55,393 bases of DNA from Hyphochytrium catenoides (taxonomy: Eukaryota > Protista > Hyphochytriomycota): the NCBI GenBank assembly GCA_900088475.1, contig FLMG01003684.1, positions 1 to 55,393 on the forward strand, written 5' to 3'. This document shows, piece after piece, positions 25,807-53,797 of the stretch. Position 1 is the stretch's first letter. Every line of letters starts with the position of its first letter. The position numbers and the translations under genes are program-made. The notes under the pieces were generated by a model, which was given only the letters and a program-made list of their open reading frames with translations, was not told where the DNA came from and made no database searches.

Positions 25807-26983
25807 GAAGCCACGTCGTAAGCTTCTAAGAACCCAGTTGAGCAAGATACAAGCGCTGTTGGGCCTTCGGCGGTTCAGACACCAAGACATGCGACGTGCA
25901 AGATGTTTCTTGTTCGTCAAAAAAGTTCTATTTATGAGTAATAAAAAGACGCGCAAGGCTCGTCTAGATAAGGCTTGCCGGAAGATCTGTCACGGCCCTA
26001 GACCGCATTAAAGATGAATATGTCTCAGAGGCAGTCAAAGGTATGGCCGTTGGCACTTGAAAACTAGGAACCCGTGACTGCTCGAACAGGAATCCAGACA
26101 AGCAAGCGGCGTCTTAGGTTGTTTGGCTTCCTTCAAAAACTTCTTTCCCAGAGGCCACCTTCTTCCGTCCGCGCGCTGTCTATGATGGCTAGCAATCATT
26201 TCTATCCTTGATGTCTTCTGGTGGCTCTTTGCTTGAGTTATGCCACTCACTTCTCCATTGGATCTGCCTCTTGGCGACGTCCACCACTACCTGCTACAGC
26301 TCCAACTCAAGCCGCCAGACGAGGTCTGGTGAGCTGGCGAGACCGCGGCTCTGGTCTCATCAAAAGCCACGAGTGTTTTCACTTCTTCCCTGCTTGCCCA
26401 TTCTCTTCTTCATTATCTGACCCATAAAGCCCATGTAGGTTCGTATTATTCTTCCTGTCCTATGAGATCTTAGAGTTTAGTATGAGAAGAGGAAACAGGG
26501 GTGGTCAGACCTACATTAGCAGGATGACCTACTCGGGTTCCTAGTAAGGAAGCGAAGGACTGGACTGTACTAATACTGAAGGCAGACCCATAATTACTCG
26601 AATTGTGGGTTCGGCATCATCATTAGAAAGGACGAGCAGACTCGGCAGCTCGCACCAAAGGGAAGGCGTCAGCCCAACAGGAAAGCCCGTTTCTGGAGAA
26701 GTCTGAAAGCGCGGAAGCCCACCGCTCTTTCATTGCTACCACGGATACTCAGATCTGATTGCAGCCCTTCCAGGCCAAGATGCAGGAAATGCATCAAACG
26801 ACATAGTTTATAAGTATAGAGTAACCAGATCGGATAGGTGTCTGTCCTACGCTGGGAGCGGAAGTCCCGTCCCATTCCCCTCTCCGATATCTCTTGCGTA
26901 TGGTCCGCCGCTGATGGTGGGCACCGCTTGGATGCTTCTGGACAAACAGAATGAGTTGCCCTCAGACTCTGGCAGAGGAGTAG

Positions 26984-29900
26984 ATGGCAGGGAGCCCTGT
27001 GGACCTTTTCTATAGGTTAGAGGCATCAAGCTCCTCAGCGAAAGAAGTGGCATTTAGCAACAAAAGCGGAAAGAAGATGTCACTCGCTTCGCTGATTGGC
27101 GTAAGGGATAAAGTTCAGCAGGAAACAGTGTTGGCCGAGACAAGGAAGGAGAAAGACAAGCGGGACCGCGCAGGTGCGTGCAGCAGGTGTCCTTCCGTGC
27201 CAATCACTTTTCACTTGTGACCACTAATAGTCGGCGGATTCAGTGTCCATGGTTCCATCCAGCGCCACAGCCATGGGTCCTTCCAGTGTCAGCACTTCCG
27301 CTTCCTTTGGTGCGTTAACCTCCACGGCGAAGAAGAACCGGGCGCAATCTTCTGGTGCAGTGGGTACTGCAAGGGACTACAGGCGGGGTCGCGTGGGTTT
27401 GGCAAGCGCCAAGGAGCCTCCGGCCTGCTGTCAAAATTGTGGCCTCTATCTGGAGATTAAGTCTGTTCCTAAGGAACTACCCGGTAGTGATCTTCCCTTC
27501 GCCTTCTAATACTCAGCAGACTGACTGGCCGGCTTGCCCATTGGCAGATCTATTGGACAAATTTAAAGCCAAGTATCAGCAGCTCTTAGAGCGTAGGCAG
27601 GCAGAGCAGAAGGAGATTCAGCAGAGAGAGAAGATCAATCGCGCTTATGGGTCTCCCACAGGTCCTCATTTTTCCTTGTATGTCCTTTGGCAAAAACCGA
27701 CTCAGTCTCTCCGTCGCTATCAGGTGAAAGGTTGCGTACTCTTTACCCAGAGTTCCCTCCCAAAAAGGTTCGGACAACGTCGGCAGTCACCAGCTCCTCG
27801 GCAGGATCCCCCGTCAATATGCACAGCCCTACCTCGGACACCTCTACTATAAGACTTGAGCCATCGTTGTATGAAGGGACTGAGTCCTGGTATGAAGGGG
27901 ATGAGGGTGCCGCTTTAGAAGAAATTGATGCGACGATGGTAGGCATGACAGCCAGATTATGAGAGGTGAATTCACGTTACTAAGCTTGAGAACCCATTCT
28001 CAGGTTGAGATTGTAGAAGAGGAAGACCAAACGGGTCCGGGCGAAAGGGAAGAGGAAGAGCCTCTTCTATCTGCCGACAAAAAGCGAGGTAGGCTTGTAT
28101 AATGACGATGGTCTAAATCATGAGCGAAACGGCACCTCCACTTACTTACTGAGTGTCACCGCCCTCCGGCGCAGAAGAGGCTCCTGTAACACGGCCCCAC
28201 CTCTCATCTGAAGTCAGTATCAGAAGGTATTCAACTTCAGCGCGGGACCAAAAGGCGTGTTTATTAAGCGTGCCCACTTTCCCTATGCAGCCATACTTCA
28301 AATGCCAGCAGCCTCGCAGACAGCGATGAGATTGTACCAGGCTATATTGTCGAAGAAGAAGTCTGGGAGAATGAGATCCGGACAACAAATGGAGAGTGGT
28401 AAGCGCAATAGGAGGGCACGGCTCTCACTTTGCGCTGACAGGACGTCAATACTCTTCCTGTTGTGTCTATAGGGAGTCTTCCCATTATAGCAACTTCGGT
28501 GGCACAATGTTCAATAGAAGTCGACGGGCTGTGCTTGTACCTCCGAAGCACCCTGAGAAGTGGGACTACATCTCAGACTGGGTTGTGGATAGGAGTTGGC
28601 CAGGTTTGTGAGATATCCCGCTCTTCCAAGAGATGCATTTGGCTGCCAGCTGACTGACGGAAGAGCAGGTTCCGAGACCGACGGCTGGTTTTATGCCGAG
28701 AGCCTGCAGGAATTTCTCAAAGCAACTGAGAAGGGACTAGAATCTCTTGAGACCGCAAGCGAAGCTTCTTCAGGAGTTAACGAAAACCACAGGGCACAAA
28801 TAGGAGCAAATGCGGGCGGATTACAGCTATGTACGTGCAAATGATCGTATGGGTGCAAGGCTTTGGACAGTCATCTTAGCCCGCTTCCCAATGCAGCCAA
28901 ACCCTTTCGGCGCAGGAGGTGGACAAGAAAGCGACGTTTTTACGGAGAGCCTCTGCCGTGGCTTGCCGAGATATCAAAACTAGGGTATGAGACAAAATAA
29001 GATGTACGAGAGCATGGTTTGGTCGCTAACATCATGACGGGTGGCTACAGATTCAAGCTTACTGGCATAGATCATCCACTCTGTAACTCATGCCAGGACA
29101 GAGCGATGGAAGCCCTAGCAAGGTTCGTTTTCTTCAAGTCCTAGGAGAGAATAGGGTAGATAGCTGTAGGGTAGCTTTCTGATTGGCGTTGATTCTGGAA
29201 CCCTCAAGGTCTTCAAGGACGGAGTCAAGGACGGAAAGCGGCAAAGAAAGGGCTAATGCTCATCTTTCGTTTTTGAAAATGGATACATTCAGGGACATTA
29301 AGGAGGCTAAGGAATTAGGAGAGGTTTATTCTCAGGTTGTGGCAGATGCAAGAGCTACAAAAAGTGTTCAAGAGCCTCATAGGCTAGCGGTTGAACATGG
29401 GATTGTGGGCTTGTCATTAAAAGAGGTCAGTGGAGAATAACTGCCAAGTCAAAAGGGACTAGAGTCATCTGAGCCAATGTCTCCCCCCTTAGCTTCAAGA
29501 CGAGTGTGAGAACATGCGGCAGAAGATTCGAGACATTGAGAACAACAGGGAAGCACTCCACGATAGGCGGGCAGGCTTACGGAGCTTCGCGGAGAAGTTA
29601 GGAAAAGTTGAGGTATGAGAATGCGTCATTAAGGTGTTTACTGTTGCTCATATGTCGACACCTTTTCTCGGGAATCTCTACAGCGTGGTATGTGGAACGA
29701 AATCGTGTCGCGGTCACTTTCCAATTGGAATCTAAGTGAGGACGAAAAAGCTGTGAACGCACAGTTAGTTCACGTACAGGACCAGGTAGCCCAGCTAGAC
29801 GTTTTACCGGTTCATGCCGATGCACCTCATGCACTTTCCATGCAGCTTCAAAAACTACATCGTTATCACGTGGTTAGCGATGCGTTCTTCATCTGGTACG

Positions 29901-30610
29901 AAGGGCCGTTTGCTACCATTAACGGGTTACGTTTGGGGCGTCTCCCTTCTCATATGGTGCGTCCGGAATAGTATGGTAGAAAACAAGCTTCACTTAGATC
30001 AAAAGTTTTACTTACGATATGCGTCTGCAGGTGGACTGGAATGAGATTAATGCAGGGCTTGGGCAGGTTGCAATGCTGGTAGCCATAATACTGAGACGAT
30101 GCGGCTTCAAGCCGTCGAAGTACATGGTCTACCCGTTCGGTAGCTTTTCCAAGATAACGGAACAGCAGAAGAAGACATCATTTCCTCTCTTTTACGAGAG
30201 CAGGTGCGACAATTGAACAAGTACCAAATGGCTCTGGTTAGCTGCTAAATCTACCTCTACGGGCAGGTTTCGGCGAAAACATATGAATGATGGGCTCAAA
30301 GCCCTTCTGGATATTGTCCAGGTGCTCATTGATATTTCGTTATTCTTCTTCCAAATTGCTTTGTTTCAGCGATGTCCTTAGCATAGCCGTTCCTTAGGAG
30401 CTCGGAGAGCAAGCCAAAAAGGAGGACAAGACTATACAACTCCCCTTTAGCATCTCCAAGGATAAGATTGACGGTCTGACAGTTACGATCTCGAGCAGCG
30501 GCAACGACGAAGCGTGGACTAAAGCGATGAAGTACATGCTGATACACCTCAAGTGGATCTCTGCATGGATCGTGCGCCATTACCCCTTCGATCTCTCCGG
30601 AGATATATGA
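26984..30610 (+). CDS. ATG6: Beclin-1/Atg6/Vps30 with an inserted DysF domain (multi-exon)
   Basis: N-terminal CQNC, IDHPLCNSC, coiled coil, and BARA-domain motifs FFIWYEGPFATINGLRLGRLP, VDWNEINAGLGQ, WTKAMKYMLIHLKW. Stop TGA at 30608-30610. Exon phases checked from exon 1 into the coiled coil. Confidence 0.93.
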
Positions 30611-30739
30611 TGGGAAGCGCCGCTATCCCGCAGCCACGAAGAACATCGTAAGGGCCCACGCTGTTAAATCTGTAAAGTAGAGTGAATTATTTTTGGGAGG
30701 AACTGGTGGCGAGACACATCGACAAATTGTGTTTGCATG

Positions 30740-33165
30740 TCAATGCGTCCGGCTCTCTCGGCTTAGATCAATGACCAAGGCTGTCGTATTGTCCCTGCTC
30801 CCAAGCTCAATGGCGCGCTCCACCAGCCTGCGTACAGTTAGCGTCAGAGGATTGACTGCAGTTCGCAGACGTCGAGCACACACCTCGCCGCGATGGCCTG
30901 GGCCTTCTGATCGCCGGTTCGGGCTATTCTTCCTGCTTCTTCCACTGACACAACATCCCACAGTCCATCGGTTGCTAGGACGACCAGTCTGTCTTCATTT
31001 TTGTCCACCATATGCTCAACCACTTCAGGCTCGGCTGTTACATAGTTCTGTCCATCATCAAGGGGGATGCAAGATGGAGACGAGGCTTAGCTCTTGCACC
31101 ACGCATAGGGTCCTGAAAACAGTTGTACCGACCTTCATAGCCTTATCACCTAGCGCCCTCGTTACAGCTAAAATACCGTCGACACGCCCGTCCTCCACGC
31201 CACCACCCGCTGCAATAATCCGGTCAACTTCATCCTGTCGATTAGTCTTGTGATCCCTAGAGAGAGAGACTAGATACGAGTCTTAGAAGAACTCTGAGAA
31301 GTGAGGATTAACTCCTACTAACCTGCGGAGCCAGAGAGCTTCACCAAAATCGCTCTTGAGTCCCCGACGTTAGCTATCATCAGCCGATGACCTCGCGCTA
31401 GACAGACCACTATGATGGGCACAACTCCGGTTAGGATGATATCAATACCGGCCCTCACGATCTTGTTCTCTGACCTGCAGTGGTTCCTTGAAACTCTGAA
31501 TCCCTTGAGTGCGATGATCCTGAGCCAATGTCTGCGTCGGTTTTCAAAAATCCATCCACCAGGGCCTTAGCCGGACGGGAGCTGTACGAGGGCTGAGTAA
31601 CAAACCAGACGGAGTCGCATAAGCAAATCGATTCTCGTGGCTCTGTAGAAAAACGTTGAGTCGTACCTCCGCAGCAATATTTTCGAATAGTGTGGCAGCG
31701 CAATACTCTGCAACTTTAACACCTCCATGTCCTGCAGAAAGCTCTTAACGGAAGCCGACAAACGTATGTCAGGATGAGTGGCATACCATCAAAGACACCA
31801 TAGAATGAGGCGTCTGCGTCTCCCTTAACCTTGCTCATCACCGAGAACCTATGGCAAATCCATTGTTAGCTCTGCGCCCACTCTAGACACTAAAATAATG
31901 GTGTTAGCCGTACCTGTCCTCGTTTGACGCTCTGCAGTTCTTACTCGTGCATACTCCATAATCATAGCACGGGACGTCCTAGAACGCCAGATGTCAGAGG
32001 AAAGGACTTTATGACGCCAAACCTCTATTACCTGGGTTCGTGACAATGATACACACGCGGGCTGAGCCTGCTGCTCGAAAGCGGGAAGCGTGACACTCCC
32101 GCTAGCATCAACACCTTTGTCGTCCTCCAATTGAAGTTTTCGCTTCGCAATAAGATTGCCTGTAAGCTCCCCAATATGTTCTGGTACATCAAGTAAAGAG
32201 GATTGTCTTAGACGGGACCTAGGAAACCAATGCATTGCGGCGTCAATCGAATTACCGTCCGCCTGGTCACGGTTTCTCTTCCTAGTATTTATAGCTGGGG
32301 TGCGCTGCTTATCTTGCGCATTTAGCGAGTCCGCTTGAAGAACACTTTCCTTCTCTAACTCTTCGGAGAGATCTCTCCTTGAGGTTTGACGTCCGTCGAA
32401 GTTTGTCGAGACAATGGAAGGTCCAAACGGCGTTGAAGAGAAAGTGTTGCCCTGGGAAATGATCTGGGCTCCAAACCCAGCCGAAGCCAGTGATGGTAAG
32501 CCAGAGGACCCTGCTTTCAAGGCTCCCTGCGGAGGGAAGCGAAGGGGTTCTTTGTGAACATGAACCCCCAGATGCCCAGAGGTAGGCTTCCTCGCTAATG
32601 CGGACTTCCACCTGCAGTATGGAGCTTCCAATCAGAATCCATCATTGATGTAGCTTTGACTAGCATCAAAGCAACAAATCTCAAACTCTAAAGGGACAAA
32701 CGATCCGTGAGCCTTACCATGCCGAGTCTTTGGGTCTCTTCTGTTCTTCCACACTAGGCTGGCATGACGAAACGTCTATAAATAATCGCCGCCGCTTCTC
32801 TCCACGCATCCCTGGGCTGACTCCTGGGCTATCTGCTAAGAGGCTTAGTCGAGCAGTTCTCTAAGCTCCTCAGGCATGGTAAAAGCAGTACCTCTCATGA
32901 TGATCCTAGGGGATGGTTGCGGACTCTCCTGCTGCAAGACTTCTGCCCTTGACAGTCGGGAAACCAGACCAGGGCTCTTGAGGAGCATGGTGCTAGCGTC
33001 GGATGCTGCCATTGGCTGCACTGCCTCACTGTTAACGAGAGCGACAGGCTTCCTTTGTATGGTAAAGTCTGCGCCTTCGGCACCATTTTCCACGGACGTG
33101 GCGAGGGCGCAGTCCGCCGAGTCCTTAACGTCCTCACGCATCGAAACAAGAGGCAATGCGTCCAT
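30740..33165 (-). CDS. PP2C (PPM) protein phosphatase with long low-complexity N-terminus; start uncertain
   Basis: Spliced motifs RASNEDR, FYGVFDGHGG, GTTA, ANVGDSRA, DHK...EVDRI, GILAVTRALGD, TAEPEV, LATDGLWDV, GSRDNTT. Confidence 0.92.
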
Positions 33166-53764: not shown

Positions 53765-53797
53765 TTAGGGTTAGGGTTAACCCTAACCCTAACCCTA
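53765..53797. repeat. Head-to-head interstitial telomeric repeat
   Basis: TTAGGGTTAGGGTT|AACCCTAACCCTAACCCTA; 53765-53792 is a perfect 28-bp palindrome. Confidence 0.95.

Follow-up and report, generated by a model that had tools for sequence, protein, structure and literature searches.

The window analysed here is the whole stretch of 55,393 nucleotides of contig FLMG01003684.1 from Hyphochytrium catenoides. Three-frame reading of positions 26800 to 31500 identified a plus-strand gene of 16 exons and 742 codons, which is likely to be one gene, encoding Beclin-1/Atg6 of the class III phosphatidylinositol 3-kinase (PI3KC3, or Vps34) complex as its product, and to carry a complete DysF domain (Table 1). 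All exon borders are GT-AG, the phases are compatible and the frame is unbroken throughout, and the presumed role in the Vps34 complex is assigned by membership of the Beclin family.

A preliminary interpretation of this DNA, made from its letters without database searches and referred to below as the sequence-only reading, had described one Beclin-1/Atg6 gene in which four short exons with compatible phases encode DysF motifs between 28343 and 28937, and in which the following exon continues in frame to the coiled coil and the BARA domain. This description was borne out. The four exons correspond to exons 6-9 and have GT-AG borders throughout, and the motif span is exact, Y252 beginning at 28343 and the last arginine of RRRRWTRKRR finishing at 28937. 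Exon 10, which has the HPLCNSC motif, follows in frame, and the matches of Pfam PF04111 to exons 13, 14 and 16 together with the continuous frame support one Beclin-1/Atg6 gene.

Structure of the gene and its product

Contigs of sequencing runs were mapped onto positions 27000-30700 of the window using DNA-type runs of the same organism and a run from 2023 (X4), which is labelled as another organism and whose kind is not on record. A 214-nucleotide contig of run X4 joins 28603 to 28669 exactly (GT..AG), intron 7 being absent, with flanks of 89 and 125 nucleotides at an identity of at least 99%. The sequence-only reading had suggested confirming the junctions by RNA-seq or long reads; this transcript-like contig supports the junction of intron 7, and the case for the other junctions is made by their GT-AG borders, by phase and by the collinearity of the protein with orthologues from intron-poor oomycetes and metagenomes. 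All eight of the indels between haplotypes or strains fall in modelled introns. A total of 40 single-nucleotide polymorphisms (SNPs) were listed, of which 18 are exonic; 16 of these are synonymous, among them both SNPs of DysF exon 8 and all but one of the eight SNPs of exons 1-4, and the density of SNPs in introns is twice that in exons.

Two starts were considered for exon 11, at 29209 and 29293, both of which are in frame. The former was rejected because an allele with a 2-nucleotide insertion (TT) at 29269 marks this stretch as intron, and the shorter exon matches the Beclin alignment better. Over the mapped region, the contigs of runs X1 and X2 reveal two diverged haplotypes or strains, which differ at approximately 1.6% of intron and 0.8% of exon positions and in small indels that are confined to introns; the assemblers broke the locus into alternative contigs, for example at 28359-28498. 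At the 5' end, the region 27080-27243 contains a candidate additional exon (ATG at 27080, GT donor at 27174, AG acceptor at 27243), which would fuse in frame with the ATG at 27249 and add approximately 33 residues, and two SNPs lie in the putative intron.

Outside the insert, PF04111 (BARA) matched exons 13, 14 and 16 with expectation (E) values of 3.8e-8, 2e-14 and 3.3e-15, covering consecutive profile positions (1-33, 36-90 and 119-177, respectively), and phmmer searches against Beclins yielded 160-175 bits with alignments spanning residues 399-731. These alignments include the putative coiled-coil region, for which Pfam searches of single exons gave no match (APG6_N). The order of elements in the protein, as given by full-length alignment, is the first CxxC, a linker, the DysF domain, a short helix, the (H)P.CxxC motif, the putative coiled coil and the BARA domain, the linker between the first CxxC and the DysF domain comprising approximately 185 residues and appearing of low complexity by eye. 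The sequence-only reading had placed the insert between the two CxxC half-motifs, and the aligned order agrees with this placement while refining it to a position directly upstream of the short helix. This helix reads EPLPWLAEIS in H. catenoides and DLSWFQELL in oomycetes, aligns with a chytrid segment called BH3 by Pfam and, as judged from sequence, is probably equivalent to a functional BH3.

Table 1. Coordinates in the window of the predicted Beclin-1/Atg6 gene and of the features of its product (aa, amino-acid residues; nt, nucleotides; AF2, AlphaFold2; HMM, hidden Markov model).
Feature	Position	Strand	Basis
Predicted Beclin-1/Atg6 coding region	27249..30610	+	GT-AG borders, open frame, SNP/indel pattern, collinearity with orthologues
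Exons 1-5	27249-27483, 27548-27661, 27724-27938, 28004-28088, 28175-28226	+	
Exons 6-9 (DysF exons)	28291-28398, 28473-28603, 28669-28830, 28897-28984	+	
Exons 10-16	29051-29122, 29293-29425, 29493-29612, 29684-29956, 30031-30203, 30267-30321, 30398-30610	+	
Intron 7, 65 nt, within DysF region	28604..28668	+	Spliced X4 contig
First CxxC half-motif CQNC, aa 61-64	27429..27440	+	Direct reading; aligns with oomycete and chytrid Beclin CxxC
Predicted DysF domain, ~145 aa, aa 252-396, exons 6-9	28343..28982	+	Motifs, oomycete-insert HMM, orthologue fold
Putative BH3-equivalent helix segment EPLPWLAEISKLG, aa 385-397, across intron 9	28947..29051	+	Alignment; helix in orthologue AF2 model
Second Cys half-motif HPLCNSC, aa 405-411	29073..29093	+	Direct reading; aligns with HPLCxxC of other Beclins
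Putative coiled-coil region, exons 11-13, aa ~421-567	29293..29869	+	phmmer alignments to Beclins
BARA domain, aa ~568-742	29870..30607	+	Pfam PF04111

Sequence and predicted fold of the insert

The signature of DysF domains consists of a WENxR-type start followed by W.[WY]..DW.VD, D.DGW.YA and RRRRW.R.R. All four motifs are present in order in the H. catenoides protein (residues 258-263, 300-309, 316-323 and 372-380), where they are found as VWENEIR, KWDYISDWVVD, TDGWFYA and RRRRWTRKRR, and a variable loop of approximately 45 residues separates DGWFYA from the RRRRW motif. An alignment of 34 oomycete inserts and the four H. catenoides exon pieces (A1) was prepared, and a profile HMM was built from the oomycete rows alone. 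The H. catenoides pieces align in register in A1, and the oomycete-only HMM matched the spliced H. catenoides protein with 42.9 bits over residues 253-393 (profile positions 3-142 of 147), compared with 11.3 bits for the best of 5000 composition-matched shuffles. Between the DGW.YA and RRRR motifs, A1 contains an acidic loop whose length varies greatly.

Pfam searches of the DysF exons taken one at a time gave no match because the pieces are too short. Among PDB sequences, phmmer searches with exons 7 and 8 as queries returned designed repeat proteins only, which were regarded as noise, ESM Atlas features for exon 7 provided nothing useful and the exact exon 7-8 junction pattern had no matches in metagenome contigs. 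A word-based search for homologous proteins with the exon 7 stretch likewise yielded no candidate with three words in common. On the oomycete inserts, PF06398 was the only recurring Pfam family (five of nine inserts, E 0.008-0.13); this is the Pex24p/Pex30 family model, of which the DysF region forms the C-terminal part.

The fold of the orthologous insert was predicted using AlphaFold2 with A1 as the input, the first row being residues 136-290 of the Globisporangium ultimum protein. The resulting model had a predicted local distance difference test (pLDDT) score of 86.2 and a predicted template modelling (pTM) score of 0.79, and displays two long strands at the domain ends with a C-terminal helix after them. 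In a Foldseek search against the PDB, the first nine matches were all DysF domains with probabilities of 0.84-1.0, including the N-terminal domain of TECPR1 (8p5p), the inner domain of dysferlin (4cah), myoferlin (9qle, 9h6x, 9qkv and 2k2o) and dysferlin (9b8k), and all later matches had E values above 3. VIA-align yielded Z scores of 7.6 over 101 of the 109 residues of 4cah and 7.3 over 97 of the 105 residues of 8p5p, as against 2.9 for the first unrelated chain. Matches among the Swiss-Prot models of the AlphaFold database (AFDB) were Mug65, TECPR1, PEX23/30/31/32, myoferlin, Fer1L5, Spo73 and dysferlin, those among the AFDB clusters were Peroxin/Ferlin and TECPR1-like DysF proteins and also an Aphanomyces Beclin, and those in the ESM Atlas were PF06398 clusters. 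As the structure searches of the model retrieved DysF domains only, the fold of the oomycete insert, as modelled, is that of a DysF domain, and by homology (42.9 bits) the H. catenoides segment should adopt the same fold. The identification of the insert as a DysF domain in the sequence-only reading, for which AlphaFold and Foldseek had been proposed as a check, is supported by both the fold of the Globisporangium orthologue, on which this check was run, and the homology of the H. catenoides segment to it.

The top structural neighbour of the Beclin DysF in the AFDB clusters was a VASt-domain protein that is 31% identical over the domain, and RING, V-SNARE and C1-domain proteins with DysF were also among the matches there; DysF seems to be widely shuffled in protist and fungal proteomes. 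TECPR1, which is likewise a protein of the autophagy machinery with DysF, was the top Foldseek match among solved structures and second to 4cah by VIA-align, with a sequence identity of 18-25%. However, TECPR1 is an ATG5-ATG12 E3-like scaffold and sphingomyelin sensor that carries two DysF domains on tectonin propellers, whereas here a single DysF lies within a PI3KC3 subunit. The Pex30/Pex23 family, Spo73, Mug65 and the inner DysF of ferlins have the fold and the W/R signature motifs in common with the Beclin insert, but these are endoplasmic reticulum or peroxisome membrane proteins, DysF-only proteins and C2-domain ferlins, none of which is in the Vps34 complex.

Distribution and origin of the insert

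A phmmer search with exon 13 against 1.84 billion representative sequences found no close relative (best matches approximately 54-64% identity over 40-50 residues), and the H. catenoides protein and its near kin are therefore absent from that library. The best full-length matches were oomycete Beclins (Thraustotheca, Aphanomyces), a glaucophyte and a chytrid. A further search with a metagenome Beclin (P0073) added approximately 120 Beclins to give a set of 270 proteins, in which a local phmmer search with residues 245-400 matched Beclins of Peronosporales and Pythiales at the equivalent position (E 1e-12 to 1e-8, 39-42 bits); jackhmmer widened the insert homologues to Lagenidium, Albugo and Saprolegniales. 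The insert HMM matched 47 of 273 sequences, namely the H. catenoides model and 46 oomycete proteins, all of which are Beclins or Beclin fragments and whose genera include Phytophthora, Peronospora, Pythium, Globisporangium, Lagenidium, Albugo, Saprolegnia and Aphanomyces. No match was obtained among these 273 sequences in Beclins of chytrids, Dikarya, glaucophytes, haptophytes, ochrophytes or labyrinthulids, and a region-limited search with the Globisporangium insert returned oomycete Beclins only and no canonical DysF protein. Among the approximately 270 Beclins sampled, the insert is restricted to the oomycete/hyphochytrid-like clade. The sequence-only reading had implied an architecture peculiar to this locus, which was incorrect because the insert is clade-wide.

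The oomycete Beclins (for example those of Phytophthora infestans T30-4, P0167; G. ultimum, P0193; and Aphanomyces astaci, W4FU95, P0159) have the same architecture, with the insert at the same position. The H. catenoides gene differs from them in having 15 short introns, and in its product the linker before the DysF domain and the loop inside it are longer. H. catenoides also keeps the canonical motifs better, since it retains the tryptophan of RRRRW where the oomycete inserts have L, V or F. Canonical Beclin 1/Atg6/Vps30 proteins of animals, fungi and plants share the two CxxC motifs, the helix at the BH3 position, the BARA domain and, as predicted here, the coiled coil, but in them the CxxC motifs are separated by a short stretch that is mostly disordered, and DysF is absent.

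Two metagenome Beclins, P0073 (a single open reading frame (ORF) of 491 residues on the compact eukaryotic scaffold L001) and P0003 (on scaffolds L002 and L003), have degenerate DysF-like motifs before the second CxxC; Pfam searches of the degenerate inserts of P0073 and L002 gave no match. On the latter two scaffolds (L002, 3496-4925; L003, 3422-4851), the gene caller divided the Beclin into an ORF of 78 residues, containing the first CxxC, and one of 347 residues. Between the two ORFs of L002, a stretch in another frame holds the N-terminal half of a much reduced DysF-like segment (W.W.DEW ... RKRKWTR), and the division of this Beclin points to an intron or a frameshift.

A maximum-likelihood tree was calculated from 49 Beclins using alignment columns that were at least 60% filled, whereby the insert was excluded. 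The H. catenoides Beclin was placed as sister to a group of P0073/P0003 and all oomycetes, with a Shimodaira-Hasegawa-like approximate likelihood ratio test (SH-aLRT) value of 84. The simplest reading of these sequences is that DysF was inserted into Beclin once, ahead of the diversification of the clade, and subsequently decayed in the P0073/P0003 lineage. The domain would thus have been inserted before the split of H. catenoides from the oomycetes and retained since, with reduction in two marine metagenome lineages.

Precomputed Pfam annotation of oomycete Beclins contains PF04111 and PF17675 only, and one oomycete record that is named by its domains lists Atg6/Beclin, BARA and coiled coil only. 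Full-text literature searches, including stramenopile or oomycete dysferlin, found no description of a Beclin with DysF, although an annotation by SMART DysFN/DysFC may exist. Published work on ATG6 of Phytophthora sojae, for which two Atg6 paralogues are reported, and of Peronophythora litchii names no domain beyond BARA and does not mention DysF. Because neither the literature nor Pfam annotation shows DysF in oomycete Beclins, the architecture seems to be undescribed, although the proteins are public. With regard to description, the novelty suggested by the sequence-only reading seems to hold, but the architecture itself is widespread, without annotation, in public oomycete Beclins. Pfam annotation overlooks this domain in dozens of public proteins, and the clade concerned, with Phytophthora, Pythium, Aphanomyces and Saprolegnia, includes major pathogens of plants and animals.

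Putative function and alternative explanations

The DysF domains of the Pex30 family and the inner DysF of human dysferlin bind phosphatidic acid (PA) (PMC12101078), and those of TECPR1 sense sphingomyelin on damaged lysosomes via exposed hydrophobic tip residues (PMC10476171). On account of this published lipid binding by other DysF domains, lipid-selective membrane contact for the Vps34 complex is rated the most likely role of the insert, with about an even chance, given that the domain is real. By analogy, the Beclin DysF would provide a second lipid-selective membrane contact of the complex, beside the aromatic finger of the BARA domain, and could direct the synthesis of phosphatidylinositol 3-phosphate to PA-rich or otherwise marked membranes; PA binding is known for Pex30 and dysferlin (PMC12101078) and would extend to the Beclin DysF by the same analogy. 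Given its location inside the CxxC-bounded loop and beside the BH3-like helix, the domain may in addition gate the regulatory region at the N-terminus. The idea in the sequence-only reading that the DysF could recruit the Vps34 complex directly to particular lipids or damaged membranes is, by the same comparison, a reasonable one.

A broader proposal, to which we give less credence than to the contact itself and which we put forward tentatively, is that oomycetes and hyphochytrids possess a PI3KC3 with its own lipid sensor. The DysF domain would read PA or another marker lipid, and Vps34 would be recruited or activated at membranes that are rich in PA, damaged or located at contact sites, independently of the adaptor targeting of animals and yeast, within a lineage-wide rewiring of lipid and trafficking enzymes by DysF. 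Beclin-1 is the regulatory hub of the Vps34 complex, and the way in which this complex selects its membranes is a central issue in the biology of autophagy and endosomes. A clade-wide DysF fixed in the regulatory N-terminus of Beclin would, if it binds lipids, constitute a natural experiment in targeting membranes by other means. The DysF-Beclin idea is directly testable in oomycetes, since silencing of ATG6 in Phytophthora sojae and an ATG6 knockout in Peronophythora litchii have already been achieved.

Several results weigh against the reading of this locus as a Beclin gene with a lipid-binding DysF domain that was inserted before the split from the oomycetes. Only one of the 15 splice junctions, that of intron 7, was seen in a transcript-like contig. 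PF06398 scored 11.7-15.7 bits against a cutoff of 26.8, and was thus below the gathering threshold on every orthologue tested, and the A1 profile found the TECPR1 DysF among PDB sequences at an E value of 5.3 only. The assignment of the H. catenoides segment to DysF draws on its motifs and on homology to a modelled orthologue. In the tree, H. catenoides has a long branch (1.59) and the support for its position is moderate. Finally, the replacement of the RRRRW tryptophan in oomycetes and the two degenerate relatives indicate that the constraint on canonical DysF function is not uniform.

The last of these points bears on an alternative in which the insert, though folded as a DysF domain, would not sense lipids but would act as a protein-protein or autoinhibitory module that replaces or modulates regulation of the BH3 type. 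The location of the insert inside the CxxC-bounded loop, immediately before the BH3-equivalent helix, would suit such a module, and the oomycete proteins without the tryptophan and the two relatives with a remnant only argue against a strictly conserved canonical lipid-binding surface. However, the DysF domains of the Pex30 family, dysferlin and TECPR1 all bind membranes or lipids in published work (PMC12101078, PMC10476171), and we consider this alternative unlikely.

Far less probable is an artefact of the gene model, in which the DysF exons would be part of another gene upstream, or of a minor isoform, and the true Beclin would start from near exon 10. It would accommodate the junction of exons 7 and 8 being the sole one in a spliced contig and linker exons 2-5 being of low complexity by eye, but the same domain order is seen both in annotated oomycete proteins and, for intron-poor relatives, within single ORFs (P0073 in L001), the first Beclin CxxC lies upstream of the DysF domain, the phases are all compatible and exons 1-4 and exon 8 contain synonymous SNPs. 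A chance imitation of the DysF signature by W/R-rich motifs, with which the absence of a Pfam match on any single DysF exon and of a significant PDB sequence match would agree, has a negligible probability and was refuted for practical purposes by the shuffle test (42.9 bits against at most 11.3 for 5000 shuffles) and by the structure searches, in which the high-confidence model of the orthologous segment matched DysF domains only.

Two further features of the window were observed outside the Beclin gene. A PP2C-type phosphatase-like gene with several short introns lies on the minus strand at 30740-31800, converging on the 3' end of the Beclin gene, and pieces of its ORF read VVLATDGLWDVVS and AVTRALGDKAMK. 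At 53765-53797, approximately 1.6 kb from the end of the window, (TTAGGG)n runs directly into (CCCTAA)n in a head-to-head telomere-type repeat, the unit of which is TTAGGG, whereas the usual telomere unit of oomycetes is TTTAGGG.

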